A stretch of DNA of 64,000 bases. Source: Ylistrum balloti. Taxonomy: Eukaryota. The stretch is from the NCBI RefSeq assembly GCF_031769215.1, contig NW_026782003.1, positions 4,030,001 to 4,094,000 of the forward strand. Reading direction: 5' to 3'. Every line of letters starts with the position of its first letter. Positions within the stretch are counted from its first letter, which is position 1. Below the pieces are notes generated by a model that made no database searches, was not told where the DNA came from, and saw only the letters and a list, made by a program, of their open reading frames with translations. The position numbers and the translations under genes are program-made. Positions 1-49,217 of this stretch are shown here, one piece after another.

Positions 1-370
1 ATATATCACAGTGTCAATACTGTATACCACAACGTCGACACACCACGACCAAATATATCACAGTGTCAACGCAGTATACCACAACGTCGACACACCACGA
101 CCAAATATACCACAGTGTCAATACTGTATACCACAACGTCGACACACCACGACCAAATATACCACAGTGTCAATACTGTATACCACAACGTCGACACACC
201 ACGACCAAATATACCACAGTGTCAATACTGTATACCACAACGTCGACACATCAAGACCAAATATACCACAGTGTCAATACTGTATACCACAACGTCGACA
301 CACCACGACCAAATATACCACAGTGTCAACACTTTATATTACCACATTACCGACACACCACGACCAAATA
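1..370. repeat. 52-bp minisatellite, ~7 copies, cut by the window edge
   Basis: Unit cacagtgtcaatactgtataccacaacgtcgacacaccacgaccaaatatac starts at 7, 59, 111, 163, 215, 267 and degenerates after 319. Confidence 0.95.
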
Positions 371-479
371 GATCATTTTGTCATTACACCACGAAAAAAT
401 CCTATACAAGTAGGAATATACCAGTGTCAACACAAATTGACAAAACAAGACACCCAGACAAAATACACATCACTGTCAA

Positions 480-1440
480 TACACCAAGATAAACTATAAT
501 AGTGCCAACAAGCAAAGTCAAAATACATATCAATGTCACTCAGACAAAATACAAAACACACATCATTGTCAACTCGCCAAGACAGTCTATAACAGTGCTA
601 ACACGGAAAGTCAAAACACATATCAGTGTCACTCAGACAAAATACAAAACACACATCATTGTCAACTCGCCAAGACAGTCTATAACAGACAGTGCCATTA
701 CGGAAAGTCAAAACATATGCAAAAGTCACCATACAAAATACAAAACACACATCATTGTCAACTCGCCAAGACAGTCTATAACAGTGCTAATACGGAAAGC
801 CAAAACATATGCAAAGGTCACCATACAAAATACAAAACACACATCATTGTCAACTCGCCAAGACAGTCTATAACAGTGCTAATACGGAAAGTCAAAACAT
901 ATGCAAAAGTCACCATACAAAATACAAAACACACATCATTGTCAACTCGCCAAGACAGTCTATAACAGTGCTAATACGGAAAGTCAAAACATATGCAAAG
1001 GTCACCATACAAAATACAAAACACACATCATTGTCAACTCGCCAAGACAGTCTATAACAGTGCTAATACGGAAAGTCAAAACATATGCAAAGGTCACCAT
1101 ACAAACTACAAAACACACATCATTGTCAACTCGCCAAGACAGTCTATATCAGACAGTGCCATTACGGAAAGTCAAAACATTGCAAAAGTCACCATACAAA
1201 ATACAAAACACACATCATTGTCAACTCGCCAAGACAGTCTATATCAGACAGTGCCATTACGGAAAGTCAAAACATTGCAAAAGTCACCATACAAAATACA
1301 AAACACACATCATTGTCAACTCGCCAAGACAATATATAACAGTACAACACGGAAAGTCAAAACACGTGCAAATGTCACCAGACAAAATGCACATCAGTGC
1401 AATACACCTTGTCAAAATATAACAGTGTCAACACCAAAGG
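480..1440. repeat. 92-bp tandem repeat, ~9-10 copies, A/C-rich
   Basis: Unit a(a/g)gtcaccatacaaaatacaaaacacacatcattgtcaactcgccaagacagtctataacagtg... recurs with a 92-bp period from ~721 to ~1089, with degenerate copies on both sides. Confidence 0.95.
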
Positions 1441-16634: not shown

Positions 16635-19600
16635 ATGGGAAAAATATCCAAATCCGTCAATTTAGGGAAGAATGTTATCGATGTTTGGCAGAATAAGAGT
16701 AACAAACTTGATTCAAGTCCGAACACGAAAACGCGAACTCAAGATTTGTGGAAATCTTCCACGAGACAATTGTTATCTAGTTTTCATGACAGCACGACAT
16801 TTCACGGAATCCGCTTCGCGTTCGGTACGGAGATATCCGTAAAACGAAGGTAGGCTGTATCTTTTTGTATTTTTCAAAAATTTGTTGTTCTTAATTGTGA
16901 TCAGTAAAACAAAGCCTGATGACTTATTCATGATCTTTATTATCAAGGTAAACATTTAACAAAACCGGATAAAATTTGATACATAAATCGATATGATTGA
17001 TACTGCATATTTCAGAATGTTTAAGTATTGAGTAACTTAAAATGTGATTTCAGTGCATATCTTTGGGTCTGTTGCAGTGTTTTTATTAGCATTGGAATAC
17101 ATTTCAAAATCTGAAATGCAAATATAAAATTACATTTTTATTTTAAAAAAAAAAGAGAAAAAAGCTCAAGATGACAAACTAGTCAATGACTCTCTGTCCA
17201 TGCCTGAAGAGCTTACGGCATTTGACAAAGGCAGCCACAATGTCTTTCTTCAAAAATCAAATCGCTACAGGATTAGGGGAATTGTCATCAATTGGATAAA
17301 AAAAAAACTTCCTCATTAACAGAACGATGTCGGTAATACTCGATGGAGAACTGTCTTACAGAACAATTGGTCATATTCTCCTTGTACTTTTTCCAGAATC
17401 TCCGTGTTCATATTTTGCCCTAGTTTGAATTATGATTATGTTGACATGTTGGTATTTTCTTGATTTTTTTGTTAAAATACAGGCCAGGATGCAACATCCC
17501 GGAATCAATCCGCCTGGGAAAGAGTAGTGATTCTGTCATTTCAGTATTAGAAATAATATTCCATCAACTATTCCAAATATGAATTTTTATGAAGTCATTA
17601 TTTAGTACATCAGCTGCAACTTGTCTGTTCCCCTCAATTAGACCATATAGGAATGTGTCATCAGCAAGTAACTTTCCCTTATATGCTGGTGTCACATTAT
17701 CATGTATTCAGACTCGATTGTAATTTTCATAGATACTTTTCTTTGGCCTCCCGAGTTAAGGCAATAACTTCATTTCGAATAGTTCCAAATATATTCCAAG
17801 AGGCTGAGGTATCCATGTGCTTGACTTTGGAATACTGACGGTTTCTCTCTTTAATTTTCAGTCTAATATCATTCGTCATCCAGATGTTATCATTAGCTCT
17901 ATTTGTTACATATTTATTAGGTAGAAATTTGTCTACATCTGTTAATATTTTGTTTGTAAGAACATAATTAGTTTCATTAATATCACCTTGCAACGGAAGA
18001 CTCCAGTCGATAGAAGAAGAGATTCATTTGCTCCATCAAAATTAATGTTATGGTAATTTGACAGAGTTTTCTTGTATGCATGCTTCTTGAAGGATTTGAA
18101 ATTTAAGTTAACAATAGTTGAACAAAGCCTGCTTCAGGAAGGAGGGAGTATATATTTTTTATCCTAAAGTTAACATGATTATTAATAAGAATATCGAGGA
18201 ATGTTGAGGAATAAGGAGTTATCATGATAGGTTTAGTCACGGTATTTTGTGATCCAAGCAATTAATGAAAGCATGTGAAGATGAGAATTTGAAATAGGAT
18301 TTAACATGCCTTGATTAATATCTTCCACCAGAATAACTTTGTAAATCAATTATATCATTATCCTTAAAAGGTTTTGCCAATAATTAACAAGTGAATGTGG
18401 GAGTCTGTAGACGCACTCAGTAAGAACGGGTTTGTACGAACATCATCACCACCACAATTATTTCGATCTTTCTTGAAGAGATTTCCAGAGTTTTCAAGTG
18501 ATACATCATTGTCAGAAATAGAGTCATTAAGATGAGTTTCAGTAACACATAGAACATCATACTCAGAACATTATGCATTAAGGAGATGCCTTTTGTTCCC
18601 TAAAGAACGGAAATTATTATCAGGGTCAGGATTGGGGTGAATATCACCACATGATAATAGTATCGGGCATATCAACACAAATTGTGTATTTCTTTTGTCA
18701 ACATTGTAAACACACATTTTTATATAATTGGTATTTTCTTATGTCATTTTTTATTTTTCTTTGCTACACTATTATATATATGTATAAGGCTGGGGCTGTT
18801 TAAATTGATTTAATATTATGTATGATATTTATGCATCCTATGATATTCTAATCCAAATTGTTATCTGTGATATCTTGCTTTCTTACTACAGGTTTACTAT
18901 GTATATACAAGACTAAATTCTTCTATCTATTATCAGAATTCAATAATACACTAAAGCCTTCTATTCCATATATGTCTATATAGCCATTAAGTCCTGCGAT
19001 GCGAATTTCAGTACTACTTCGTAGTGAAGTGTATTACAGCCAAAGGCAGAAACATTATTATTTCATAGTGGTACTTGGATATTTAATAATCTATAGAACA
19101 TCTTTAATAAGGAAAGTCCTTTAGCACAGCTGTACTTATGTAGATATATAAACAGAGTACATAGGATATTAACTGAATCTAAAACGAGGACGTCACGTAC
19201 AGATAAAAGTGTAACTTGATAAAAAAAAATTGAGGGATAACAAAGAGAAATTATTCAAGGATTATGTCATTTAAAGTTGATATGTTCAGCAAACTTTTTT
19301 CTACATATACAATGTTTTTGAAAATGAATTTCACAATTTTCTTTTACGATGTTGTTTCAGAAAAAAAAGTAAAGTACATGTGTATATTCTGAACCATTTC
19401 CGAAGAACTTCAGAAATTTCTTCCTCTTTTTATCTAATTTTATTGTCCTTCTTCCCTGTCTTTCCTTAACTCACTACCCCTTCTACATTGCGCATTCCTA
19501 ATAACTTCTTGAAATTTTTATTTTTAGACGTTATAATCTTACCGCGTATTTATCTTTCCTCTAACCATTATCTTCTTTCCGCCATCATACTTCTGAACGC

Positions 19601-22600
19601 CAACAGTCTTCCGCACCACATTTTTTTGGTTCCATTTCAGATCTGACATACTTATTTTTTAATGTTGCAAATTTCAATGTCAAAGGATTCCCGTCCTTCT
19701 GTATTCGTGTCGTGTTTGTCAGCCTTTCTTTATCATCTTTTGCCATGCCATTTATTTCTTGTCGCTGCTTTTCCCGACGTTTTCACTTTTTCGACATCAT
19801 TCACGTTCATCATGTCGTTGCTTTTCCTCACGTCCTCCATCTTTGTTCAAGACATCAATTTACGTTGCGTCAACACAATTTGTGTTTTGTCATTGTCCCG
19901 CATTCATCTTTTCGTTGTACATTGTTAACGACTTTGTTCAATATTTGAGACATTGCTAATTATAAGGTACTTGTTGGGACATTGCTAAAAACCGTACTTC
20001 TATAAATAATGTAAAGAAGTTTTCTCCTGACTTAAGCAAACACACATAATATTTTTATGAATGTTACAGAGTCATATGGATATCATTGTGCGTACTCAGC
20101 AGTTGTTTGCTGGTGGTAGACGTGGCAGATAGGATACAACATTACTTTTCATACCCGGTATCAGTTAACCTCCAGGTAAATTACAAGGAGAGCATGCAAT
20201 TTCCTGCCGTCACCATCTGTAACCAAAACAGCTTTCGGTAAGTATCATCAGTAGGTATACTGTTGTCTATTCTTTCGTTTAATCTTGTATTCATTTAAAT
20301 CCTTTGAGAGGTAAAATGTTCATTTTCATAAATTAATGACTATAAGAAAGCGTAAACAATATAATAATTCAAAAGCAACGAAACTATTGCAAAATATGAA
20401 GGAATGAAAACAGTACACGGAGGCCAATGAAAACATAGAATAAGATCGTGTTAAACATCTTTAAGTTCATCGACGTCTATATGTTCATATTTTGCCCTCA
20501 TTTGATCGATTATGTTTGAATTACGACTTTGAATTACAATAATGATGTCATGTCCACTCAGAGAAACAAAACACTGCGAAATATGATACTAAACTATACT
20601 AAGTTTTAATACAACATTAAATGTTAATTACCCCTCTGAAGGAGAACACTGGCGATACAAAACGGACATTATGATCTACTGAAGTCGTTATACAAAGACG
20701 GTGATTCTCTGTATTTGTCTGGCGAGAAAAAAAGGAAATTCAGTGAGACTTGGATCAACGTTACCATGGAAACATTGTTTATAAACAACTCTCACCGGGC
20801 GGAGGACCTCATCGTTACGTAAGAAATTAAATTCGGTGTTGAATTTCAGCAAGTAAACTTTCTAATTGATAAACATAACTAAAAAACAAATAAAGAAAAA
20901 AAACCCTTTGTTTTGGGTCAGAAAATATTAATTTAACATTTTGATTTAAGTATGTTAACAAACGAAAAATGGTTTCCACAATAAATTACTATCATTTATC
21001 AGTTTAATTAGTGATGTTGATATTTCTATAGACAAATTCCTTATTTCTACTAAGATATAAAACTTTAATTATTTAATAGTTGTAAATGGAAAGGTGAGGC
21101 CTGTACTTGGAATGATTTCAAACCTGTGTTGACCCAACATGGACAGTGCTACACCTTCTTAGGTAACACAACAATCGAGGACGGTAACATCGTCGACTCA
21201 CCAGGTAATTATCATTGATCGCTTTAAACAATATGGTCACTTTTTGACTTGTGAAAATTATCGTTCAGAAATTTCATTTGAACTGCCAAGAATTTAGTTT
21301 AAGGAAACAAAGGAATATTAGATATAATAGTAATTACTCTCCATTTCCGACCTCCTTCCCTAGAGGAGTTGAAATCATTTGGTATTAAAGATAATGCCAT
21401 GTCTGTATATTTATACTACTTTGTGGTATAATATGAAATCATAACGAGGTCTTCTGATTATGTTTAGGGGTGTACAGTGGCCTAGAAGTGATATTGAACA
21501 TAGAAGACTATGATGGTATGATGGGGCCTCATAGTAGCGGCGGTGTGAAGGTCATTCTACATCACGAAACTGAGGTCCCCATGCCAGAATACGGCAACGA
21601 GCTCCCTTCTGGTCGGCATGGTTTCATGGATGTCCAAGTATCTAAGGTATGAACCAAATTCCTGTCAACTCTAAAAACTCTATGGTAAGCTAACATAACA
21701 AAAAATAAGTTTATCTTGAAAATAAGCGTGCAGTTTCGTACACAAATAAACCTGAATTTCCTTACTTTAGAAGAAAATAAGTCGCGTCTCATTTTCGAGT
21801 TATCATCGCTTCAGTACGACCTTACAAACGCTACTGCATTAGGAATGTGTATAAATATTCGTCATTTCACGCGCTTAACTGCACACGAGTGTCTGAATAC
21901 TTGAAATTGAAAAACGGGTATTTTCTTTGTTTTTAAATGTTTTGAACGCGAAATCAGGAGAAGATCGAGAAAAAAACCAATGAGCAAAACTTGGAAAAAA
22001 TGATTGTTTTTATGTTAATTTAAACATGCTGTTATTGCTTGTTTACTCGAATATTTCAATAAACATCTTTAACGTTTTGGTCTAGCAAAACAGTTGTTCT
22101 TCTCAAACTAATTTATCAAATTTGTTTTAAGAAATAATGTTATCTTATTTTTACAAGGCACAGAACGTTCCGCCTCCCCATGGACAGTGCGTGACTCGAT
22201 CGCTAAGGTTTATGGATATATATTCCTATACAGTTGGGGCCTGCCAGATGGAGTGTGAGATGCAGTACATCTCGTCTCTTTGTCACTGCCGACAAATACA
22301 CATGCCTATGGGAATGAGTAAGTGTATCCTACAGAGACACATATCATATCTCATTTGATAATAGAAAAAATGAATCATAAGACCAACAAGAGAAAATCTA
22401 AACTCAAACTGAATTCGTAAAAAGAACGGAGAAAATAAAATAACATCAAACTAAGACACCTTAAAGATGTCACAGCATGTGCTACTTTTTTCAGAATGAA
22501 CTTGACATTTTTTGTAAACATTCGTCTTTTACAGGTTCTCTTCCGCCTTGTAACGTGGACCAATACAGCACTTGTGTTGTTGAAGCAAAAGGTATCTGTT

Positions 22601-25600
22601 GGTTTCCTCTTCCGGGAGTTTATGAATATTTCCCTGCTATATTTGCCCTTATACTACCTGACGTGACCAGTTTAGATTTGTAAACGTCATTTCCTTTGAA
22701 TGTATGAAGCTACTGGCAAATAACGCACCTTATATGGTGAGTCTGGAACGACTAATAAAGAACAAAAGAGAAAATTTACAGGTGTAAACCGTAATTTATT
22801 AAAGAAAAATAATGATTTTTTCTTGTTGCAGTGAAATATAGGCGACTTCACGACGTCGCGTGTAGCTGCCCTGTACCATGTACTCAAACCTGGTACCGTC
22901 CTAATTTGTCATACGGTACCATCTCCAGATTTTCAACAAACCAAAGGAGAGTCATTCAAAACAGGAACATCAGAAGTCGACTTATATATGCACGGGAAAT
23001 GGCTTTTCGAGAGGAAATGGATTATTATACTTTACGGCGATCATTCGTTCATCTTAACCGTATAAGTTTGCCAAACTTTTACCGAGTCTTGCATGACTTA
23101 GAGAGTGTCGATATACTCCTAAAACAGTCGATAGATACATTTAACTATTTCTATGACTGTATACAGCGTGCACGGAAATACCTTGAAAAAGGTCATAGTG
23201 TGTACCCTAGTTATTATATATATACCAAGCGGCTGGATAAAACACGATTGGGTCGCGACTTCGTGGATTTGACATCATACCTTGATAGTCAGATTCGCCT
23301 TATGGAGACGACTGACAGGCCTGAGAAATGGACTGCGTACTATGAAACATTGCAAACTAAAGTTAGACTGGATTTGTCAGCTATTAAAGAAGTGTTGAAG
23401 GAGAAAGACTTTTTAGATTGGCTCTCAAAGCAATATCTAGACGTTTGGTTCGCTGACGATGATCAACTGCGAAGTAGTGCTTCACCAACAGTTTATTCTG
23501 TTCCGGCTGACTTGCAATGGATGGAAATCTATAAAACTATGAATAGGTGTAAGAGCACGTTACAAAGTTACATGGACATCGCTAAAACGTTTTTGAAAAC
23601 GGGAAAAATCGATTTGAAAATGCTGGAGTCACTGAATTCAACTTCAGCTAGGTTGGCAAAAACGTTTGACCAGCAGCGAACACAAATGGAAGTTTTTTTC
23701 AAAGAAAGTGTCGTTAGCAATTTCGACCACGTCAGTTATGTGCTGGATGTACAATCGCAACCGATGACTTCTGTGATATCTACATTTGAACAAAAATGCA
23801 CTACAATGTACATTACTATGGGAATACGGAAGGCTAGCATTTATCTCAACATGAGTGTTGACTATCTTTCACAGTATTTTGATAGGAGACGAACCCTCCT
23901 GACTGTGGCTGAACATTTTGACTCAAATCACATGAAGTATTTTATGGAAGAAGTGAGGACATTTGCGTCTGGAACATTTCACAATAAAGAGTTTAGCATG
24001 GAGTCAACTAATTGTTTGGACATGTTGCTGATAGAATATTACGCCATGCTCAAAGTATACGAACTCGTCAAACCAGCCTTAAATGGCATGAAGATCGGTT
24101 ATTACACACATAAAGATAATGCCATGCCGTCAATTAATCAGCTTGATAATTACAATTTTGATAAGGTGGAGCTCCTGGATGTCATTCTGAAACTAGATGA
24201 TGTTATCAAGATCATGGAAGAGTTCAAACAGTCGCTGAAAACAGATCAACAATTTTACAGGTACAAGGTTTAGGATTCCGTGTGTGAAGCTTGAGATCAT
24301 TTGTGAATATTTCAGTCTGTGTTTGTGTTTTCAGTAGTCCTCCATCTCCTTATTTGACTGCTTTCTTGATTAATAAGTTACGGCACCTTGAGCACCTTGT
24401 CTGTTTTCACAGTCTAAGTATTTAGCGGGAATTCTGCACGTGAACAATTTGGCTATATAACTCGGAGAATTTCTATTTCTTGCCAGTCAGCGGGAAAACG
24501 TGACAAACTAGTTTGCTGAATCACTGACGGTCTGTCTGTCTGTCGTAAATGCGTACAGTTATGTACGGACGCATTTGTCGTTTATACTTAGAGTCACTGT
24601 CGGTTGAATGGAGTAGAAAATAGAGTTAGAATGCAGTGTTAGGAACAAAATAAAAATGAAGCGTGTAGGAATAGGAGATTAGTACCTATTCATGCAAGGT
24701 CAATTTTACTAGTCCGTTGTCATTTTTGTTATAGAAGTTAGGCCTTGTAGACAGTTTTGACTTTTGAGAGTGCGTAGTGATGTCTTGTTTAAATATCACT
24801 AAATTCATCTTGTCTCCCTAATAATACTCAATAGAATATTATGTCACTCATTGGAGGAAAATTAATAAAATCATCCAAGACATAAATTTAACAACAACGC
24901 TGTTTGTTGAGTTCTTGATGGTAACTATTGTCATTTTAATAGGGAAAATTATGATAAAAATAACATAAGACATACATGTGATCACAAATTAAAATACACA
25001 GCTAGAATTAGATACAATAGAGCCAAAATACTAAATCACACTGCAACTGCAGCCAATTCGTCCTTTCAGGAATCGCGAGTGGTCGGAACAGCCTAAATGA
25101 AACCAATGGCGACTAGAAGAAAGGGAATCAAACTTGATTGAAAGTGTCAAAATCAAGAAGGGGAAAAGTACAGGCCTAATAATTCAATGAATTCCGTTAT
25201 TCGACCATAACATATTATCTTCAAACTTAACAATTTCTTAATTAGCTGTTTAACTAATAACAGCCAATAGTGCAATTAATTTAGTCAATTTCACTGATAA
25301 TGAAGTGTGTTTTGTTTACATAATACCGTGCGCTTTGATGTTTTCAGGGACAACTTTCTTCATCTGAATATATTGTTCCATGAACTGAGATATGAACAGC
25401 TAACTCAACAGATTGATTACACTATATTTGCTCTGATGGGTAAGTAAAATCTAGCTGCAAATTAATCTTCAGGATCCTGATGAACAATATATTGTTGTTA
25501 TTTTGATATAGAAATCGAATTTCTCTTGTTATTTCCATTTCTCCTATTTACGATTGATTTATGTGGAGCATGCGTCTTAACACAATATTTCAATATTTGG

Positions 25601-27155
25601 CCGAGATGTAATGCATTCAGGATATTCATTTTTAAAGATATGTAAAGGTCTAATAATTAAATTTTAACTTTTGTTTCGGTGATGATATTTTGTTGAAAGT
25701 AAAAAACATTTCGAATAGCAAAATGTAATAAGTTTCTGTGTTTCTTTCACCACTTCAGGCGTCAGAATATGCGTATTAGGAAATATTCATTTTCGTTTCT
25801 TACAAGCAGACATTCTTTGTTTTTCTCGAGATGATCTTTCCCAGCTAACCTCTTTTTATTTCATCAAAATGTAATAACAAGAAACTGAAAATGCTGAAAT
25901 GCTGCTTTTAGTCGATTTTAATTTCTCAAAACTTCGTAGCATCCAAAAATATCAATTTTGAAAAAAAATATTTTAAAAAATTAATTCTGTATCAGGCAAT
26001 GTGCTGAATTTCAACTTTTTAAAGACCTTGTACTTTGATAGAAAAAGTATGGTTATTATTTACAAAATCAAAAAAGACACTTGTTTTTTCGCAATTTTAC
26101 CAAAATGTCGAATTGTTCTATGATCAAGAAATAAATTTGAATACATTTCAGATCATCAAAATCAAGAAAATGATCCAACAAATCAATATACACGTATTTC
26201 AAATTTGTGATTTTTATATTTAATTCGTTCAATATTTATTTTACAATATTTGCATTACACAAGTAAAAATCGACTACAAAACGTCATAGTTATACGTTCA
26301 GCATTGGTAGCTTAAGATGCTATACAACTTTAAATAACAAAGCCACAAATGCAAAAGTGTACAATATAACGTTGAAATTAATTTAATTTGAAAATTAATC
26401 ATATTCTGCTTTCGGTCAAATACGATTTTTAGATCTATTTGAATTTCGTTGATCAAACATAAAATAAAAGGCATATTTCGGGATGAAATTGAAGCAAAAC
26501 ATTTTTTTTAAATATTGATGATCGATATGGTTTTAACCACCACTTCCCTGATGTCCCAGGCCTTGTCGTTGTTATTTTATATAAGGATGCTCGATTAGGA
26601 TAGTAAACCGAGTTACAGAAATCAGAATCCGGATTGTTGTAAATTATAATTATTAAAATCGTATATTTTTTATGCTGCACTAAAAGACTTCTCGAAATAT
26701 CGTTTTCATTCGGTTTCAAATCGCTTTAAAGACCACCTTGGGGAAATGACACTAAGAAACTTTTCAAAACATTGATTATATATTCGGTAACATCTCGTTC
26801 GTAAAACCACATTGGGGATTTGACACTAAGAAACTACTCATGATTTCGTTTTCATTTGGTTTCAACTCACTTAACAGATCACCTTGATGTCTCGACACTA
26901 ACTCAAAATATTAATTACGACCATCTTTTTTCTTGTTTTAAATGTCATTGTTATTTTTGTTGAATTCCAGGTGACATTGGTGGGGCCATGGGCCTTTGTA
27001 TTGGTGCCAGTGCGCTAAGTGTTTTTGAGATCATTGACTTCATCACAATACTTTTAGCATCTATCATGGTTAAAAGGAAACGTTCCTCAAAGTCACATCC
27101 TACGGTCGTCCACGTCAAGCCCAAGAATGAGTTGAATGTGAAACCGGTATATTGA
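16635..27155 (+). CDS. DEG/ENaC (ASIC-clade-like) ion channel, 10 exons, ~928 aa, with a giant extracellular insertion
   Basis: Exons 16635-16849, 20070-20237, 20642-20818, 21080-21204, 21468-21646, 22158-22317, 22535-22591, 22832-24260, 25348-25439, 26971-27155. All are GT-AG, phase-consistent and total 2787 nt. Motifs: pre-TM1 STTFHG, TM1, FPAVTICNQN, TQHGQCYTF, SGLEVILNIE, GVKVILH, thumb cysteines ending CSCPVPC, NFLHLNILFHELRYEQLTQ, TM2 MGDIGGAMGLCIGASALSVFE. Confidence 0.93.
17200..17360 (+). mobile_element. LINE RT fragment (CR1/L2-like) in intron 1 of the channel gene
   Basis: Translates AFDKGSHNVFLQKSNRYRIRGIVINWIK then, after a frameshift, FLINRTMSVILDGELS. This matches the KAFDxVxH...GI.G..L.WI..FL..R.Q.V pattern of RT domain 3. 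Confidence 0.7.
17570..18700 (-). mobile_element. decayed LINE ORF2 5' part: 2A-like motif, APE endonuclease, EN-RT linker
   Basis: LLSCGDIHPNPDP (~18663-18622); DVLCVTETHLNDS...FKKDRNNCGG (APE motifs); IWMTNDIRLKIKERNRQYSKVK...WNIFGTIRNEVIALTREAKEKY (linker, ORF 17727-17993). Confidence 0.82.
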
Positions 27156-27395
27156 GATTCACGTTATTTCGGACAGAAACATTATTTGAACCGAAAGGAG
27201 TTATCTGATTATTCAATGCCTAGATTACAATATTGACTCTTTAAACTGTGATATTATCTTTCTGTAATCACCCTTAAATCCATTTTAGTATTTGACTGTG
27301 TTTACATGTTGTGTATTATACATTAAATATGAAGGATATATTTTACCATGCATGATTGTTAAGAAAATGTATTTGAGGTTCTGACAAATGAAATA

Positions 27396-30984: not shown

Positions 30985-31841
30985 CAGAGTGGTCAGTACT
31001 AGATGACTACACTGACATTATTGATCCTTTCTGTTCCCCTGAGGGAGTGGTCAGTACTAGATAACTACACTGACATTATTGATCCTTTCTGTTCCCCTGA
31101 GGGAGTGGTCAGTACTAGATAACTACGCTGACATTATTGATACTTTCTGTTCCCCTGAGGGAGTGGTCAGCACTAGATAACTACACTGACATTATTGATC
31201 CTTTCCGTTCCCCTGAGGGAGTGGTCAGTACTAGATAACTACACTGACATTATTGATCCTTTCTGTTCCCCTGAGGGAGTGGTCAGTACTAGATAACTAC
31301 GCTGACATTATTGATACTTTCTGTTCCCCTGAGGGAGTGGTCAGTACTAGATAACTACACTGACATTATTGATCCTTTCTGTTCCCCTGAGGGAGTGGTC
31401 AGTACTAGATAACTACACTGACATTATTGTTACTTTCTGTTCCCCCGAGGGAGTGGTCAGTACTAGATAACTACACTGACATTATTGATCCTTTCTGTTC
31501 CCCCGAGGGAGTGGTCAGTACTAGATAACTACACTGACATTATTGATCCTTTCTGTTCCCCTGAGGGAGTGGTCAGTACTAGATGACTACACTGACATTA
31601 TTGATCCTTTCTTTTCCCCTGAGGGAGTGGTCAGTACTAGATGACTACACTGACATTATTGATCCTTTCTGTTCCCCTGAGGGAGTGGTCAGTACTAGAT
31701 AACTACACTGACATTATTGATCCTTTCTGTTCCCCTGAGGGAGTGGTCAGTACTAGATAACTACACTGACATTATTGATCCTTTCTGTTCCCCTGAGGGA
31801 GTGGTCAGTACTAGATAACTACACTGACATTATTGATACTT
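30985..31841. repeat. 58-bp minisatellite, ~14.5 near-identical copies
   Basis: Unit gagggagtggtcagtactagataactacactgacattattgatcctttctgttcccct repeats head to tail with no spacers. Confidence 0.97.
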
Positions 31842-32604
31842 TATGCAACAGGTTTATCCGCTTCTTACAATACGTGTTGTTTAACACGTTTCTTAGCCCA
31901 ATAAGAATAGAGGAAAGTTATGTATGAGTTTTTTCAGTACGTTACGTTGAATTGGAATGGACTATTCTGTTTTAACAACACACTAATGTCAATGAATTGT
32001 TAAAAACCACAGCACAGTTTTGATAGTATCACATAGTTATGTTTATATTAGTGCTCAGGTGGACATTTAAAAGCTAACTATTCACCTTTACTCCTTTGTA
32101 AATGTACCTTATGGAGGCTTACAAGTAAAGAATTTTAAAAACAACGGCACAGAGCACTGTTTGAAGGGTGTAATATTCCCCATTAACAATCACTATATGG
32201 GAAACGTGCGCGCCGATCCGTTCGTTCAAGCCTGCAAGGATTTACATATACCCTGTTAATCAATAGTACAATAAAGAAACACGTTCTAGCAATTAAAGAA
32301 ACATGTTCTAACACTAAGCTAAAAAATAATATGTTATCAAATACGGCATATAGATTTATACCTAGTATAATGCCGTATTTAGTCAACGTTTGATCTTCAT
32401 CAATTAATACGAGATAGGTAGTTAATATTTTGTAATTCCCGAGAAACATGGACATAGTTTGTTATTATATATACCCGTGTTTTATGTGACTGTTATATTT
32501 CAGTTAGACCTGGAACCAAAGTGGTCAAGGATATCCTTTTTTTATATATATTTCTGATGAAAAGGATCAGAGAATATAACTGCCTGGTCAGACGAATAGT
32601 ACCT

Positions 32605-33415: not shown

Positions 33416-34783
33416 ATGAGAAGACTTAATATAAACGCTGCCCGGAAGTATATCTTCAAATTTCGTGTTTTATTTCCTGTGATAGGAATTCTCATCTTAT
33501 ATTTTGTATACAAAAGTGAAATCAAAAGCACAACTATTCCATATTCGGGACAGCTTCCAACGCAAAAGCATGTTATCACAGAATATAACAGGTATATGAC
33601 TACTTTCCAAACGAATCATGCAAACAATTCTGTCCCTAAGGAACGAGGCGACCTGCAACAAAATGGTGACCGGAAGGAGACTGGAAACCAAGATATTAGA
33701 GAAGTTAAGCTAGTCGCAAATGATGAACGGATCGCTATGCCGGAAGATAATGTCGAGGATGAAAGATATCCGGGCACATTTTCCCCTAGTGAATATCCAT
33801 CTGCTGTCAACTTAACCGGGATTTTAAACCAGTACGATATGAAAGGTTATTCGGATGAACAGCCAGTTAATGATATTCATTATAGGTATTTTGTTAATCC
33901 CAGGCACATTTGTAATGTTTCCAGCGACATCAAAGTGTTATTTATTGTGAAAAGTAGCCCATGGCACACATCAGCTCGGCAAACCATCCGAGAAACTTGG
34001 GCAAACACAAAACGGTTTCCATCAATACGGATTATCTTCTCTTTCGGAACTCCAAAACAAAGTAAAAGACTTGAAGCCTTACTGGAGGAGTCCTCTACTC
34101 ACAAGGACATCCTCATCGTGAAAAATTACATTGACAATTATTACAATTTGACCTTGAAGACTGTTAGTGGTTTAAAATGGGCGGTAACCCACTGCGCACG
34201 CGCCTCGTATGTAGTGTCTGTTGATGACGATATTTACGTCGCACCTGATTTGCTGCTTAGATTTCTTCACAGACCACAGATTCGGAAAATTCATAAATTC
34301 TTCTCCGGTCATCTCTTAATAGGTACAAAACCTATAAGGAATCCTAAGGATAAATGGGCCATTTCCTTATCCGAATATCCCTTTCAGAACTATCCGAATT
34401 ATATATTCGGAGGCTTTGTTATTATGTCAATGTCTACAGTGAAATCATTTACCATAGCAGCACAGTATACCAAGTTATTCAAATTTGAGGATGTGTATTT
34501 GGGGATTTTAGCAGCTAAACTTGGAATAGAAGCCACTAATAATGGGTATGTTAACTCTAGGAAAACATTCACTGTTTCTGAATCATTTAGGACAATCATT
34601 GCTTCTCATTTTTACAGCGATCCAAAAGAATTACAAAGAGCATGGGACTGTCATTTGAGTATATTGGACAAAAGTGACGAGAAATCAATTTTTTGTGACT
34701 ATATTGGCAAACGCTTAAAGAAGCTGAAGTCAGAAATAGACAGTATAGTTAGCTGGATGGAAAATGTCAAGTTCAACTCATAG
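33416..34783 (+). CDS. GT31 beta-1,3-glycosyltransferase (B3GALT/brainiac-like), paralogue 1, 455 aa, short stem
   Basis: Type II signal anchor VLFPVIGILILYFVY; VKSS, RQTIRETW, DNYYNLTLKT, VDDD (DxD), YPNYIFGG, FEDVYLG. Single coding exon; acceptor-like ccttcag at 33388 just upstream. Confidence 0.95.
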   Translation: MRRLNINAARKYIFKFRVLFPVIGILILYFVYKSEIKSTTIPYSGQLPTQKHVITEYNRYMTTFQTNHANNSVPKERGDLQQNGDRKETGNQDIREVKLVANDERIAMPEDNVEDERYPGTFSPSEYPSAVNLTGILNQYDMKGYSDEQPVNDIHYRYFVNPRHICNVSSDIKVLFIVKSSPWHTSARQTIRETWANTKRFPSIRIIFSFGTPKQSKRLEALLEESSTHKDILIVKNYIDNYYNLTLKTVSGLKWAVTHCARASYVVSVDDDIYVAPDLLLRFLHRPQIRKIHKFFSGHLLIGTKPIRNPKDKWAISLSEYPFQNYPNYIFGGFVIMSMSTVKSFTIAAQYTKLFKFEDVYLGILAAKLGIEATNNGYVNSRKTFTVSESFRTIIASHFYSDPKELQRAWDCHLSILDKSDEKSIFCDYIGKRLKKLKSEIDSIVSWMENVKFNS

Positions 34784-42274: not shown

Positions 42275-44311
42275 ATGGGAAGACCCAAACATAAATTAAG
42301 AACTTTAATGTTGCTCTGGAAACACATGTGGAAAGTTTGTTCTGTGTTAGTGCTGATTGGAATGTTTATCATGGTCTACCTTTCTACAACGAATGACAAC
42401 AAGATGGACCAAACGTCGGGAGTTAATTTTCAAAGGAGACATGTACAACAATTTGAAACAAATAATTTAAAAAGAAATAATCCGTCAAGGTTTTCAGTTA
42501 GGAAAAAACGACGGATGGATTCGAAAGATACTTTGGAGAAACAGTACAACATGTCACCTAATCTTAAAACTGCTAATCAGGGAAATAAAGAAATCAACAA
42601 TCGTGATCGCGCTAAAAAACAGAAGGAGGATGCAAGATACGAACATTTTCCTCGTCAAGACAGAGATATTGATCATCAAGGAGATACCGCTAACGAGAAT
42701 CTCTATCGAGGTGAACAGCTGGAAAATCTACAAAAGGACGAACAAGAAAATATCAATCAGGACGAACAAGGAAATCTCAAAAAGGATGAACAAGAAAACA
42801 TCAAAAAGGACGAACAAGAAAATATAAAAAAGGATGAACAAGAATACGTCATTCAGGACGAAGAAGAGAATCTCAAAAATGACAAGCAAGTAAAGAGCAA
42901 TCAAGAAGAACAAGAAAATCTCAAAAAGGGCGAACAGGAAAACATCAAAAATGACGAACAAGAAAATCTCAAAAAAGACGAGCAAGGAAATGTCAAAAAG
43001 GACGAGGAAGGAAATCTCAAAAAGGACGAGGAAGGAAATGTCAAACACGAAGAACAAGAAAATATCAAAAAAAGTGAACAAGAAAATCTCAAAAAGAGTG
43101 AACAGGAAAACATCAAAAATGACGAACAAGAAAATCTCAAAAAGGACGAACAAGAAAATCTCAAAAAGGACGAGCAAAGAAATGTCAAAAAGGACGAGGA
43201 AGAAAATGTCAAACACGAAGAACAAGAAAATATCAAAAAGGGTGAACAAGAAAATCTCAAAAAGGGCGAACAAAATGATTTAAATTATCAAAGCAAAGTA
43301 GGAGCAAAATTTACACCTGATGGCTATCCCATGTATGTAAACATGAGTGACATCGTAAGACAATATGAAATGAGAGGCTACGCTGCTCAACAACCTATCA
43401 ACTCTTTCAATTATAAATATAACATCAACCCCACTCATACATGTGACCAATCGGATAAAATAAAATTGCTGTTCATAGTAAAGAGTAGCCCGAAACACAA
43501 TGACAGGCGAATAAAAATTCGTGAAACTTGGGCTAACAGGAAACGATTTCCAGCGATAAGGACTGTTTTCTCAATTGGAATTCCAGGAAGTGGGACAACA
43601 TTATTAGATTTACAGGACGAATCAGTTACATATAAAGATATACTCCAAGTGCATTATCTTGATAACTATTACAACCTTACCCTGAAGACAATTACTGGAT
43701 TAAAATGGGCAGTGACTAACTGTGAACGTGTCCCATATGTGTTATCCGTAGACGACGACATGTATGTTGCAACCGATTTGCTGCTTAATTTTCTCTATAG
43801 ACCAAATGTACGCAAAATAAATGCTCTCTTCTCTGGTCATCTTTTGGTCAATACAAAGCCCATTCGTAGCGATCATTCTAAATGGTTTTTGGAGAAGTCT
43901 GAATACCCCTTTCAGAACTATCCGAATTATATATTCGGAGGATTTGTTATTATGTCAATGTCTACAGTGAAATCATTTACCATAGCAGCACAGTATACCA
44001 AGTTATTGAAATTTGAGGATGTGTATTTGGGGATTTTAGCAGCTAAACTTGGAATAGAAGCCACTAATAATGGGTATGTTAACTCTATGAAAACATTCAC
44101 CTCTTCGGAATCATTTAAAACACTCATTGCCTCCCATTTTTACAGCGATCCAAAAGAATTACAAAGAGCATGGGATTGCCATTTAAGTACAGTTGACGAT
44201 GACGATGACAAAGCCATTTTCTGTGATTTTATCGGTGATCGTCTACGCAAAATACAATATGAAATTAATAGCATAGTTGGATGGCTTGAAACCGTTAAAT
44301 CTCGGTCATAG
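42275..44311 (+). CDS. GT31 paralogue 3, 678 aa, stem with 23 copies of an 8-aa ENLKKDEQ-type repeat
   Basis: TM VCSVLVLIGMFIMVYL; 24-bp repeats at 42722-43273; VKSS, RIKIRETW, DNYYNLTLKT, VDDD, YPNYIFGG, FEDVYLG. Confidence 0.95.
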   Translation: MGRPKHKLRTLMLLWKHMWKVCSVLVLIGMFIMVYLSTTNDNKMDQTSGVNFQRRHVQQFETNNLKRNNPSRFSVRKKRRMDSKDTLEKQYNMSPNLKTANQGNKEINNRDRAKKQKEDARYEHFPRQDRDIDHQGDTANENLYRGEQLENLQKDEQENINQDEQGNLKKDEQENIKKDEQENIKKDEQEYVIQDEEENLKNDKQVKSNQEEQENLKKGEQENIKNDEQENLKKDEQGNVKKDEEGNLKKDEEGNVKHEEQENIKKSEQENLKKSEQENIKNDEQENLKKDEQENLKKDEQRNVKKDEEENVKHEEQENIKKGEQENLKKGEQNDLNYQSKVGAKFTPDGYPMYVNMSDIVRQYEMRGYAAQQPINSFNYKYNINPTHTCDQSDKIKLLFIVKSSPKHNDRRIKIRETWANRKRFPAIRTVFSIGIPGSGTTLLDLQDESVTYKDILQVHYLDNYYNLTLKTITGLKWAVTNCERVPYVLSVDDDMYVATDLLLNFLYRPNVRKINALFSGHLLVNTKPIRSDHSKWFLEKSEYPFQNYPNYIFGGFVIMSMSTVKSFTIAAQYTKLLKFEDVYLGILAAKLGIEATNNGYVNSMKTFTSSESFKTLIASHFYSDPKELQRAWDCHLSTVDDDDDKAIFCDFIGDRLRKIQYEINSIVGWLETVKSRS

Positions 44312-46510: not shown

Positions 46511-47183
46511 TTTTCAATGCAATCAGTGAGAGGTTATTAATTTTCCGAATCTGATATTATAATTGCTGTTGCTTATCAATGCGTCAGGGCGTCATCTTTT
46601 TCTGTCATCAAACTATTGCTTTTCTCTGCTACCTTATTTAACTACTCTAAACAATTTCCATTCATATCCATTGTGAATGGATAAAACCCCCACCCCCTGC
46701 ACAGGATTTGACAGTATTTTAAATTTCTTACATAGCGGTGTGACTAAGGGTCATGTAAACTGGGCTCTTATTTAAATAATACATTCTGTCCACAAAGAAG
46801 ACACTCGAAGTTGTTTGAATAATGGAATTTGATAACTTTCGCTGTATATACCGATATGAATAAATGCTGGGGATATGAAAACGAACGTGTTTGATATATA
46901 GCAATAGGACTATAATGTGACCTCTTTTGTATTCTACATAAAACATATCCCATTGTTATCAAAGTCACGATTTAGTATATGATAGTAAAAACTTTTTTGA
47001 TGATATTGTCTATCTTAATATGCAAATATCCAGTGTCAGCTAACATACCTTAAATAGAGTTTCCGTCACGATTAGTAAAAGACACTAGAAACAGTTGATG
47101 TATATTTACATTCATGAAACTTGCTCAGCACTTTACAGTTTAAATCGCCAGTCGTACGAGATAGGGGTAATGCAGAGGTGAAC

Positions 47184-49217
47184 ATGCTGCGACATAAACG
47201 TGGTATAAGATCATTTATGGTACTCAGGCGACATTACGTCAGAATTGTCTCAGTCTCAGTACTGACTGTTGTAATCCTCTTCCTCTTTCTACACATTAGA
47301 GATAACATCAATGGTGCCGCCGATAAATCTTACGTCATCACCAAGAAGAGTCCTGTCCATGACTGGCAAGAGGAGAAAATACTTCGTTCCTACAAAGAAA
47401 CGAAAGATTATTTCTTCTCAAGGAAAAATAAATCGGAGGGCAATACCGAAACTCAGATACGATTCACTCTGCAGCAAAATGGTTTTTCAGAGGCACAGGG
47501 TTATATAAGGAATACAACACGTAATGAAAGTGAAACTCGTGAAATAGATCATCATTTCGATCAGCAAGAAGACATTGCTCAGCAAGGTCATGACAAGACT
47601 GATAAGATAGCTAATAACATGGGTCATCAAATTGTTCAACAAGGAGACATCACACGGAAGCAGGGTGGCCCGGAGAATGAGATTATTCAACAAAAAGATC
47701 AAGTTCAGCAAGGCCCAGACGCACATCGATTCGTTCGACAAAACGATATAATTGTTAAGGATATTGACACGGGTCATCAGCTTTTACAACAAGGGGGCGT
47801 CGCTCAGAAGAAGGATGACACGGGTCATCAGATTTTACAACAAGGGGGCGTCGCTCAGAAGGAGGATGACACGGGTCATCAGCTTTTACAACAAGGGGGC
47901 GTCGCTCAGAAGGAGGATGACACGGGTCATCAGCTTTTACAACAAGAAGGCGTCGCTCAGAAGAAGGATGACACGGGTCATCAGCTTTTACAACAAGGGG
48001 GCGTCGCTCAGAAGGAGGATGACACGGGTCGTCAGATTTTACAACAAGAAGGCGTCGCTCGGAAGGAGGATGACACGGGTCGTCAGCTTTTACAACAAGG
48101 GGGCGTCGCTCGGAAGGAGGATGACACGGGTCGTCAGCTTTTACAACAAGATCATGACATTCATCAACTTAGACATATTAATGAAATGAAGATCAACGAA
48201 AAACCGTTTACGCCAGATGAGTATCCACTAAATGGGAATCTATCTGATATCGTGCGTCAGTATCAAACAAAGGGATATGCCGATGAGAAACCAATAAATG
48301 TTTTTGATCACCGCTACATCATTCATCCAGACCAAACATGTAGTGGAAACGATACAATAAAGGTGCTATTTGTAGTGAAAAGTAGTCCAGACCACAGCAT
48401 GAGGAGGGCAATAATTCGTAAAACATGGGCCGACAGAAAACGATTCCCCTGGACTAGGACTGTTTTCTCCTTCGGGATACCAGAATATAGCAAATCGTTA
48501 GTAAATCTCCAAGAAGAATCTGCCAAAAGCAATGACATTCTCCTTGTAAGTTATTCTGATACCTACTACAATCTGACCCTGAAAACTATACATGGAATGC
48601 GGTGGGCAGTAACTAATTGTGCACGTGCTATGTACGTAGTGTCCCTAGATGATGACATCTACGTTGCACCCGATTTACTGCTTGGTTTTCTTGACAAACT
48701 TCCGGTACGAAAAACAATAAAACTCTTCAACGGTCATTTGATGACTGCCACTTCCCCAGTACGGGATGCAAAAGGAACTTTCCAAAAGTGGTATGTTACA
48801 ACAAATGAATACCCCTTTCAAAACTATCCTGATTATATATTCGGAGGGTTTGTTATCATGTCAATGTCTACAGTGAAATCCTTTACCATAGCAGCACAGT
48901 TTACCAAGATATTGAAATTTGAGGATGTGTATTTGGGGATTTTAGCAGCAAAACTTGGAATAGAAGCGACATTTAACAGTTATGTTGATTCTAGAAAAAC
49001 AATAACTGCTTCGGAATCATTTAAAACACTCATAGCATCTCATTTTTACAAGGATCCGTTTGATTTACAAAAAGCTTGGGAATGTCATTTAAGTATCATT
49101 GAAAATGATAGTTCCAAGAGTATATTTTGTGTTACCATAAACACGCGTTTGCATGAACTGCAATCTGAAATAGACAAAATCGTCGATATGGTGGAATCTG
49201 TGAAGAAATACGTGTGA
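47184..49217 (+). CDS. GT31 paralogue 4, 677 aa from the first ATG, stem with ~7.5 copies of a 17-aa DTGHQLLQQGGVAQKED repeat
   Basis: TM IVSVSVLTVVILFLFL; 51-bp repeats at ~47765-48150; VKSS, RRAIIRKTW, DTYYNLTLKT, LDDD, YPDYIFGG, FEDVYLG. The ORF track starts at a TTG (47121); the ATG is at 47184. Confidence 0.95.
   Translation: MLRHKRGIRSFMVLRRHYVRIVSVSVLTVVILFLFLHIRDNINGAADKSYVITKKSPVHDWQEEKILRSYKETKDYFFSRKNKSEGNTETQIRFTLQQNGFSEAQGYIRNTTRNESETREIDHHFDQQEDIAQQGHDKTDKIANNMGHQIVQQGDITRKQGGPENEIIQQKDQVQQGPDAHRFVRQNDIIVKDIDTGHQLLQQGGVAQKKDDTGHQILQQGGVAQKEDDTGHQLLQQGGVAQKEDDTGHQLLQQEGVAQKKDDTGHQLLQQGGVAQKEDDTGRQILQQEGVARKEDDTGRQLLQQGGVARKEDDTGRQLLQQDHDIHQLRHINEMKINEKPFTPDEYPLNGNLSDIVRQYQTKGYADEKPINVFDHRYIIHPDQTCSGNDTIKVLFVVKSSPDHSMRRAIIRKTWADRKRFPWTRTVFSFGIPEYSKSLVNLQEESAKSNDILLVSYSDTYYNLTLKTIHGMRWAVTNCARAMYVVSLDDDIYVAPDLLLGFLDKLPVRKTIKLFNGHLMTATSPVRDAKGTFQKWYVTTNEYPFQNYPDYIFGGFVIMSMSTVKSFTIAAQFTKILKFEDVYLGILAAKLGIEATFNSYVDSRKTITASESFKTLIASHFYKDPFDLQKAWECHLSIIENDSSKSIFCVTINTRLHELQSEIDKIVDMVESVKKYV

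Follow-up and report, generated by a model that had tools for sequence, protein, structure and literature searches.

The 64,000 nucleotides (nt) of Ylistrum balloti DNA analysed here (contig NW_026782003.1, positions 4,030,001 to 4,094,000; this whole stretch is called the window) contain on the + strand a scallop gene of ten exons for a channel subunit of the DEG/ENaC family. As assembled from the sequence, its coding region comprises 2784 nt, corresponding to 928 amino acids (aa), and all introns are of the GT-AG type with compatible phases. Exon 1 (16635..16849, 215 nt), for which an orthologous exon was detected in Pecten and Argopecten by tblastn, supplies the start codon, the cytoplasmic N-terminus and the HG motif TTFHGIRF. 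The first transmembrane segment (TM1) and the motif following it, FPAVTICN, are encoded in exon 2 (20070..20237, 168 nt), which matches positions 23-78 of the Pfam ASC profile (PF00858) with an E value of 4e-13 and contains a hydropathy peak at aa 72-92. The variable finger region in exon 3 (20642..20818, 177 nt) gave no Pfam match when scanned alone; exon 4 (21080..21204, 125 nt) continues the extracellular domain (profile positions 156-183). Beta-ball and palm follow in exon 5 (21468..21646, 179 nt; profile positions 203-261), where the alignment to ASIC2 starts at residue 244, the Cys-rich thumb in exon 6 (22158..22317, 160 nt; profile positions 274-321) and a further part of the thumb, recognized by exon assembly, in exon 7 (22535..22591, 57 nt). 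Exon 8 (22832..24260) is treated below. Exon 9 (25348..25439, 92 nt) starts with DNFLHLNILF and encodes beta11-beta12 (DNFLHLNILFHELRYEQ...; profile positions 403-430); its junction with exon 8 is used in the RefSeq model LOC132545538 too. The last exon (26971..27155, coding to 27152 with the stop codon at 27153-27155) carries the second transmembrane segment (TM2) with GDIGG...IGAS and the C-terminus, matches profile positions 433-455 and aligns to TM2 of ASIC2.

The most unusual element of the gene is exon 8, which measures 1429 nt versus 57-215 nt for the other nine exons. It opens with the thumb base CSCPVPC and WYRPNLSYGTIS, proceeds through beta10 and a very long insert, and ends in an alpha7-like segment (..QQFYR), matching the ASC profile from position 356 to about 391. 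The open frame around it has 485 codons, and with the GC content of the window (34.6%) and stop codons at 6.2% per frame about 3e-10 such stretches would be expected by chance. The insert proper (approximately aa 393-825; 22927..24225), supported by the gap in the PDB alignment, by hhalign and by helix prediction, is predicted to be an all-helical extracellular domain. Within it lie an internal ATG (METTDRPEKW, 23302..23304), where the 411-aa RefSeq model LOC132545538 starts, an N-S-T sequon at aa 629 (23635..23643), an N-M-S/T sequon at aa 700 (23848..23856) and, between exon-8 residues 305 and 400 (23746..24033), the core that is most conserved in the three-scallop alignment.

The exon pieces are collinear on PF00858 and none of the profile positions is missing, which places the protein within the DEG/ENaC family. 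The profile match reached an E value of 1e-16 for P0001, the 411-aa RefSeq protein of the window gene, and 4e-40 for the Argopecten orthologue. The channel motifs (TTFHGIRF, FPAVTICN, the Cys-rich thumb and GDIGG...IGAS) are intact, and hydropathy analysis gave two peaks only, at about aa 72-92 and 877-900, as for two transmembrane helices. Judged from its sequence, the locus encodes a full-length 928-aa DEG/ENaC subunit whose channel machinery is predicted to be intact. An earlier, sequence-only reading of the window had described nine short exons around one giant, fully open exon 8 with good splice sites and phases, CSCPVPC and beta10 at its start, DNFLHLNILF at the start of exon 9, and an intact, ASIC-like TM2 and HG motif. 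Our re-assembly agrees with all of this, and the closest solved relatives are indeed ASICs.

In a phmmer search against all PDB chains, ASIC2 and ASIC1 were the best solved relatives of the Argopecten orthologue P0002 (E values from 7e-25 to 8e-23); the matches to ENaC and FaNaC structures were far weaker (7e-12 to 8e-4). Residues 8-145 of P0002 align to ASIC2 residues 244-379 and residues 583-650 to 393-460. Between these two blocks, after beta10 and before the alpha7-like segment (..QQFYRDNF..) leading into beta11, the Argopecten protein has 437 residues versus 13 in ASIC2. Since the ASC profile loses no position, the extra residues constitute a pure insertion. The scallop proteins share with vertebrate ASIC1 and ASIC2 (6l6p, 2qts, 9e4k) the palm, the Cys-rich thumb, beta10, the alpha7-like segment, beta11-12 and the GAS pore, and differ from them at this site, where about 435 residues stand in place of the 13 of ASIC2. 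The insert contains only four Cys in 445 residues and no hydrophobic segment, and its two N-x-S/T sequons are invariant across the three scallops, a combination that fits an extracellular, glycosylated domain. The insert of the window protein was predicted to be all-helical. A Pfam scan assigned no family to it and detected no transposon, phage or other family in it. The location of a large insert exactly at the knuckle and its helical, Cys-poor, sequon-bearing character, both noticed in the sequence-only reading, were thereby confirmed, and the transposon match which that reading had considered as a possible outcome was not found.

Two other origins of the extra sequence were considered and rejected. 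A weak Pfam alignment reaching profile position 421 hinted that the insert opens with a degenerate second copy of beta11-12. This was rejected since, in full-length relatives, the first ASC stretch runs no further than profile position 389-391 and the second takes up the profile again at 388-403. A transposon or other foreign origin was dismissed on the lack of any other Pfam family and on the location of all homologues found, which sit within DEG/ENaC genes. According to the sequence comparisons, a folded all-alpha extracellular domain of about 430 aa, predicted to be N-glycosylatable and encoded by a single exon, takes the place of the short knuckle segment linking beta10 to alpha7.

All ten exons are present at the loci of Pecten maximus and Argopecten irradians, and in the three scallop genera exon 8 is a single open frame with the same acceptor and donor. 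Over 476 aligned residues the exon-8 peptides show just two gaps, each of one residue, and the identity is 61% for Pecten and 55% for Argopecten. In the three-scallop comparison the proportion of synonymous differences in exon 8 (pS) is 0.65-0.70, near saturation, versus 0.22-0.28 for nonsynonymous differences (pN), which gives a dN/dS ratio (omega) of 0.13-0.18. Omega is 0.03-0.12 in the insert core of about 100 residues and 0.19-0.30 in the stretch of exon 8 that precedes the internal Met, so purifying selection acts there too; a dN/dS analysis of the insert, which had been proposed together with the original gene model, thus finds all parts of exon 8 under constraint. Contigs of a public DNA run, apparently from another individual, contain one single-nucleotide polymorphism in exon 8 (22849 C>A) versus 19 in 4.4 kb of flanks; over window positions 21400-27200 (5.8 kb) the same run gave 20 single-base differences and 5 small indels. 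Taken together, conservation, selection and polymorphism indicate that exon 8 is translated.

It was recognized that the insert is much more widespread than the scallop gene. A first profile, built from the three scallop inserts and searched against 1.84 billion representatives, gave four close matches (P0001, the window's own protein, and three giant-exon open reading frames, ORFs, on unlabelled contigs) as well as weak ones (E about 1e-4) to the start of the insert in DEG/ENaC proteins of 920-1000 aa from Lineus, a nemertean, and Dimorphilus, an annelid. A profile of these long proteins retrieved 44 proteins, mostly of 860-1256 aa, from bivalves, gastropods, a chiton, octopuses, Lingula, nemerteans and annelids. 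Their inserts of about 415-480 aa (about 480 aa in the canonical members) stand between beta10 and alpha7, as does that of the window gene, and BLASTP covers 93-98% of the Lineus query among the long proteins. The databases list them as "uncharacterized", "acid-sensing ion channel 1" or "degenerin-like protein del-10"; examples are Ylistrum LOC132559172 (P0025, 901 aa), Mizuhopecten 'ASIC1' (P0024), Magallana 'del-10-like' (P0034), Lingula LOC106170158 (P0017) and Lineus LOC135497392 (P0008). The suspicion that long lophotrochozoan relatives were already lying uncharacterised in the databases was therefore justified.

The homology between the insert of the window clade and that of the canonical long-knuckle proteins extends from end to end. 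Comparison of the two with hhalign gave a probability of 96.4% (E 1.4e-9, 340 columns) in local and 98.1% (E 4.9e-13, 419 columns) in global mode, and the hmmsearch matches between the window insert and the family domain are collinear. The gene organization is shared too: the insert lies in one exon which ends ...F-Y-R/K just before the beta11 exon, in the window gene as well as in Pecten, Argopecten, the contigs L003-L006, Lingula and the canonical Ylistrum paralogue. The Lingula exon measures 1644 nt and includes the thumb base as in the window gene. In the canonical paralogue of Ylistrum (LOC132559172), which spans about 44 kb on contig JAUZWB010000583.1 (L008), the exon has 1392 nt and an extra intron separates it from the exon of the thumb base and beta10. 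The window-clade ORFs on L003, L005 and L006, which are unlabelled ENA and Logan contigs, have 24-47% identity to the scallop insert, and L003 carries flanking DEG/ENaC exons as well. The two clades thus agree in the site, the similar length, the one-exon encoding and the homology of the insert; the window clade differs in being about 35 residues shorter, in its identity of only about 15% to the canonical proteins and in having a conserved core of its own. The spacing from CxCxxPC to DIGG, 521-527 aa in most family members, is 491 in the window gene.

In a quick maximum-likelihood tree with two echinoderm ASIC-like proteins as outgroups, for which long-branch effects were flagged, the window gene and its Argopecten orthologue fall within the mollusc group (SH-aLRT 84), where they share a long stem (2.09), and the canonical scallop paralogues have short branches; the position of the window gene inside the mollusc group is therefore tentative. 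On the sequence evidence the window gene is a fast-evolving duplicate of the canonical clade, and its insert a divergent copy of an old lophotrochozoan module that occupies the same site in channels of molluscs, brachiopods, nemerteans and annelids. Of the sequence-only reading, the channel with a knuckle insert stands as described; it is no peculiarity of one gene, the window gene being a divergent paralogue with a domain found in at least four phyla.

Mytilus possesses a long-branch long-knuckle paralogue of its own (P0051 and P0053, stem 1.64) which is not an orthologue of the window gene, suggesting that fast-evolving duplicates were born repeatedly.

A structural model of the insert was obtained by AlphaFold2 from a 48-sequence alignment headed by the canonical Ylistrum paralogue. 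The model is all-alpha, with a predicted local distance difference test score (pLDDT) of 90.6 and a predicted TM score (pTM) of 0.78, and includes helices of 84 residues (54-137) and 60 residues (303-362). Structural matches to it form two four-helix-bundle sets, at residues 113-309 and 59..490, and the canonical insert can be read as two four-helix bundles stacked end to end with the 84-residue helix running through both. At 1.5 Å per residue this helix corresponds to a rod of about 12-13 nm, hereafter called the mast, and, to judge from the residue ranges that the bundles match, both chain ends would lie at its base, as expected for a domain plugged into a loop. The best model would accordingly be a self-contained, monomeric, two-tier four-helix bundle in each subunit, as predicted for the canonical paralogue and not for the window protein itself. 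A crown formed jointly by the three copies, which the sequence-only reading had envisaged along with tether, ligand-binding or gating functions, is a hypothesis.

No specific relative of the insert was found in the PDB: a Foldseek search of it with the canonical insert gave no match at E <= 0.001 (the best being 0.018). The top VIA structure matches were designed bundles with Z of 12-15, where the noise level for helical bundles is about 13 and a match below it reflects a common arrangement only. Kinship with TTYH, with the tripartite pore-forming toxins (AhlB, HblL1, MakB) and with the chemoreceptor four-helix-bundle (4HB) domain was rejected, as the Z values lie under this noise. Neither the window insert nor the canonical one gave a usable result in feature searches of the ESM Atlas.

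DEG/ENaC channels are known for their variable finger domains, and lineage-specific extracellular insertions that tune gating have been recognized in ENaC (the GRIP domain) and FaNaC (finger insertions). The scallop gene resembles these channels (6wth, 9blr, 7yvb, 8on7) in having its extracellular domain enlarged by insertion, but there the insertions belong to the finger, are far smaller and do not form long helical rods. The extracellular domain of ASICs has about 300 residues according to surveys of DEG/ENaC and ASIC evolution (one of them PMC9949801), and the insert roughly doubles the size of this domain. The same survey found no ASICs in the molluscs it sampled, so the membership of the window gene in the ASIC clade is unproven; the proton-activation residues which it lists in rat ASIC1a numbering include H73 and K211 (PMC9949801). 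The family bears on the question of what replaced the ASICs that this survey found missing in molluscs. Other studies mention lophotrochozoan clades only as "uncharacterized" (PMC10507113, PMC9234716, PMC9822975). Several family members have been named 'degenerin-like protein del-10' by NCBI after DEL-10 of C. elegans (T28D9.7), a channel which groups with those of the ASIC/BASIC type and whose activating stimulus is unknown (PMC9822975). A screen of C. elegans channels lists DEL-10 in one passage among those with currents no different from water-injected controls, and a figure legend there describes its transient currents as amiloride-blockable (PMC10424705). No description of a knuckle domain of this kind, the third outcome that the sequence-only reading had allowed for, was found in the literature; as far as found, a large rigid knuckle domain conserved across phyla is undescribed there, unnamed in Pfam and unsolved.

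What could such a domain do? In ASIC structures the knuckle and the upper palm are the least mobile parts and act as a static scaffold. A domain added at this place should leave the gate undisturbed, and a binding surface would thereby be carried far above the body of the channel; if the mast points away from the membrane, the height of the channel would be more than doubled and it would reach to the matrix, the mucus or a neighbouring cell. There the mast may bind an extracellular partner (matrix, mucus, glycocalyx or apposed cell), and once bound it could hold the channel in position or transmit force to it by way of beta10 and alpha7/beta11. A functional precedent, by analogy, is the glycan tether of ENaC, where the tethering element is a glycan on a channel of normal size and not a protein domain; the asparagines involved reportedly lie in the palm and the knuckle. 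In shear-force sensing, N-glycans of alpha-ENaC have been described as potential tethers that link the channel to the extracellular matrix (PMC7958617). We consider a docking or tether arm the most likely role of the mast, at slightly less than even odds. The window paralogue, evolving fast with a constrained core, has probably changed its partner or ligand compared to the canonical proteins. The mast would in any event offer a testable handle on the tethering and localisation of DEG/ENaC channels, a long-standing question for the mechanosensitive members.

The overall explanation, a divergent long-knuckle channel bearing a helical mast, is given a probability of roughly 0.8, and the following points weigh against it. 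Its functional part, the docking or tether arm, we only infer. The AlphaFold model of the window insert, computed from the three-scallop alignment, is poor (pLDDT 44, all helical) and was used for helical content only; consequently the fold is transferred from a paralogue at about 15% identity, and what that fold matches are helical bundles of a generic kind, scoring below the noise that such folds produce. Most of the canonical hallmark residues (conserved at 75% or more) are lost in the window clade. These hallmarks include model positions Q114, N121, F122, R124, E131, R166, N190, G201, F205, P304, F392 and R398; outside the thumb base and beta10, Y361 alone persists across the whole clade, with P222 and F122 (as Y) kept in part. 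For this reason the window gene was filed as a divergent sister or paralogous branch and not as a canonical member. Furthermore, no RNA run with this locus was found; the only public run containing the DNA is genomic, with contiguous contigs and no splice joints. In RefSeq, the Ylistrum and Pecten models begin at the internal Met of exon 8 (window 23302), and in Pecten the gene is divided between two calls (L002:6654-9552 and L002:10001-13240).

Among the other functions, two were each given about one chance in four. According to the first, the mast is a gating tether or contact sensor made of protein: each channel would carry three rigid arms of 12-13 nm bound to matrix, mucus or an apposed membrane, and contact or displacement of these would gate or modulate the pore. 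Were this so, the long-knuckle proteins would form a new, phylum-spanning class of lophotrochozoan DEG/ENaC receptors with a built-in transducer of force or contact, and the scallop gene of the window would be a re-targeted duplicate. According to the second, the distal four-helix bundle is a ligand sensor like the bacterial periplasmic 4HB domains, its occupancy being relayed by the long helix to the upper palm, where it would modulate gating. Part of the canonical model (residues 113-313 or so) indeed superposes on 4HB sensor domains (4k0d, Z 10.6; 8bsa, 9.7; 3o1h, 9.7; 5xsd, 9.3) and, again partially, on the 4HB_MCP and PilJ clusters of the Atlas (TM by row 0.74 and 0.67), a single helix of 84 residues spans both tiers, and many DEG/ENaC channels are ligand-gated. 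These Z values nevertheless lie under the noise level of about 13, with designed bundles scoring higher, no binding-pocket residues were identified in the model, and the knuckle is static in ASICs. Between the bacterial domains (of the 4HB_MCP, PilJ, TorS and LytS types) and the mast the similarity is one of shape, in a single four-helix tier; the sequences are unrelated, and a loop of an animal channel is a different context. A role of the mast in assembly or subunit choice was rated lower than either, as rather improbable.

It could be supposed that the main product is the 411-aa protein, made from an internal promoter and start at 23302 and consisting of two thirds of the insert, beta11-12 and TM2, or that the insert is spliced out of most transcripts. 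In two species the models take the same internal Met as their start and pass over earlier Mets of the exon (the downstream Pecten model starting at the Met homologous to 23302), Pecten has two gene calls, and no RNA run that could contradict a short product was found; P0001 (LOC132545538) itself is 100% identical to the window protein from 23302 onward. We regard this as quite unlikely. The TGA that closes the upstream Pecten call (L002 9550-9552) belongs to the +1 frame of exon 8; the call therefore enters the exon out of frame, and its end looks like a phase error of the model and not like a real stop. The Argopecten model runs unbroken from exon 5 through exon 10. Ahead of the internal Met, too, exon 8 is open and evolves under purifying selection in the three species, and the ORFs on other contigs include this portion. 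As regards splicing within the exon, which the sequence-only reading had named as a danger to its gene model, a scan of the internal GTs against the donor consensus revealed no strong in-frame donor; the only GT to equal the real donors in its match to the consensus lies in the wrong phase. In the canonical clade a contig of 3474 nt holds an uninterrupted ORF of 929 aa, indicating that mRNAs of that clade contain the insert. Finally, a fragment with one transmembrane segment would be unable to form a DEG/ENaC pore. Genome annotations have mis-split the gene in two scallops, and knowledge of the domain would improve such gene models.

That the window gene is a decaying, non-functional duplicate, or its insert a captured foreign or transposon sequence, is very improbable: the stem branch is very long (2.09 substitutions per site), most hallmark residues are lost and the ESM Atlas feature search with the window insert found nothing, but the 928-codon frame is intact with all splice sites kept in three genera, the pore and gating motifs are preserved, omega is 0.13-0.18 for exon 8 and 0.03-0.12 in its core, Pfam found no transposon, phage or other family, and each homologue found sits within a DEG/ENaC gene.

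Downstream of the channel gene, a single-exon gene of the Galactosyl_T family (PF01762, GT31) is located in Argopecten and Pecten (L001:24553-25698 and L002:19644-21074, respectively). At the matching place the window has an ORF of 455 aa (33416-34783), a GT31 candidate by its position, so that synteny looks conserved; further long ORFs lie at 42275-44311 and 47121-49217 within the GT31 array of the window. Between the channel gene and the GT31 candidate there is a 58-bp tandem repeat (window 30987-31842, 14.8 copies, 96% identity), which is open in all three frames and produces repeated pseudo-ORFs of 39 aa.

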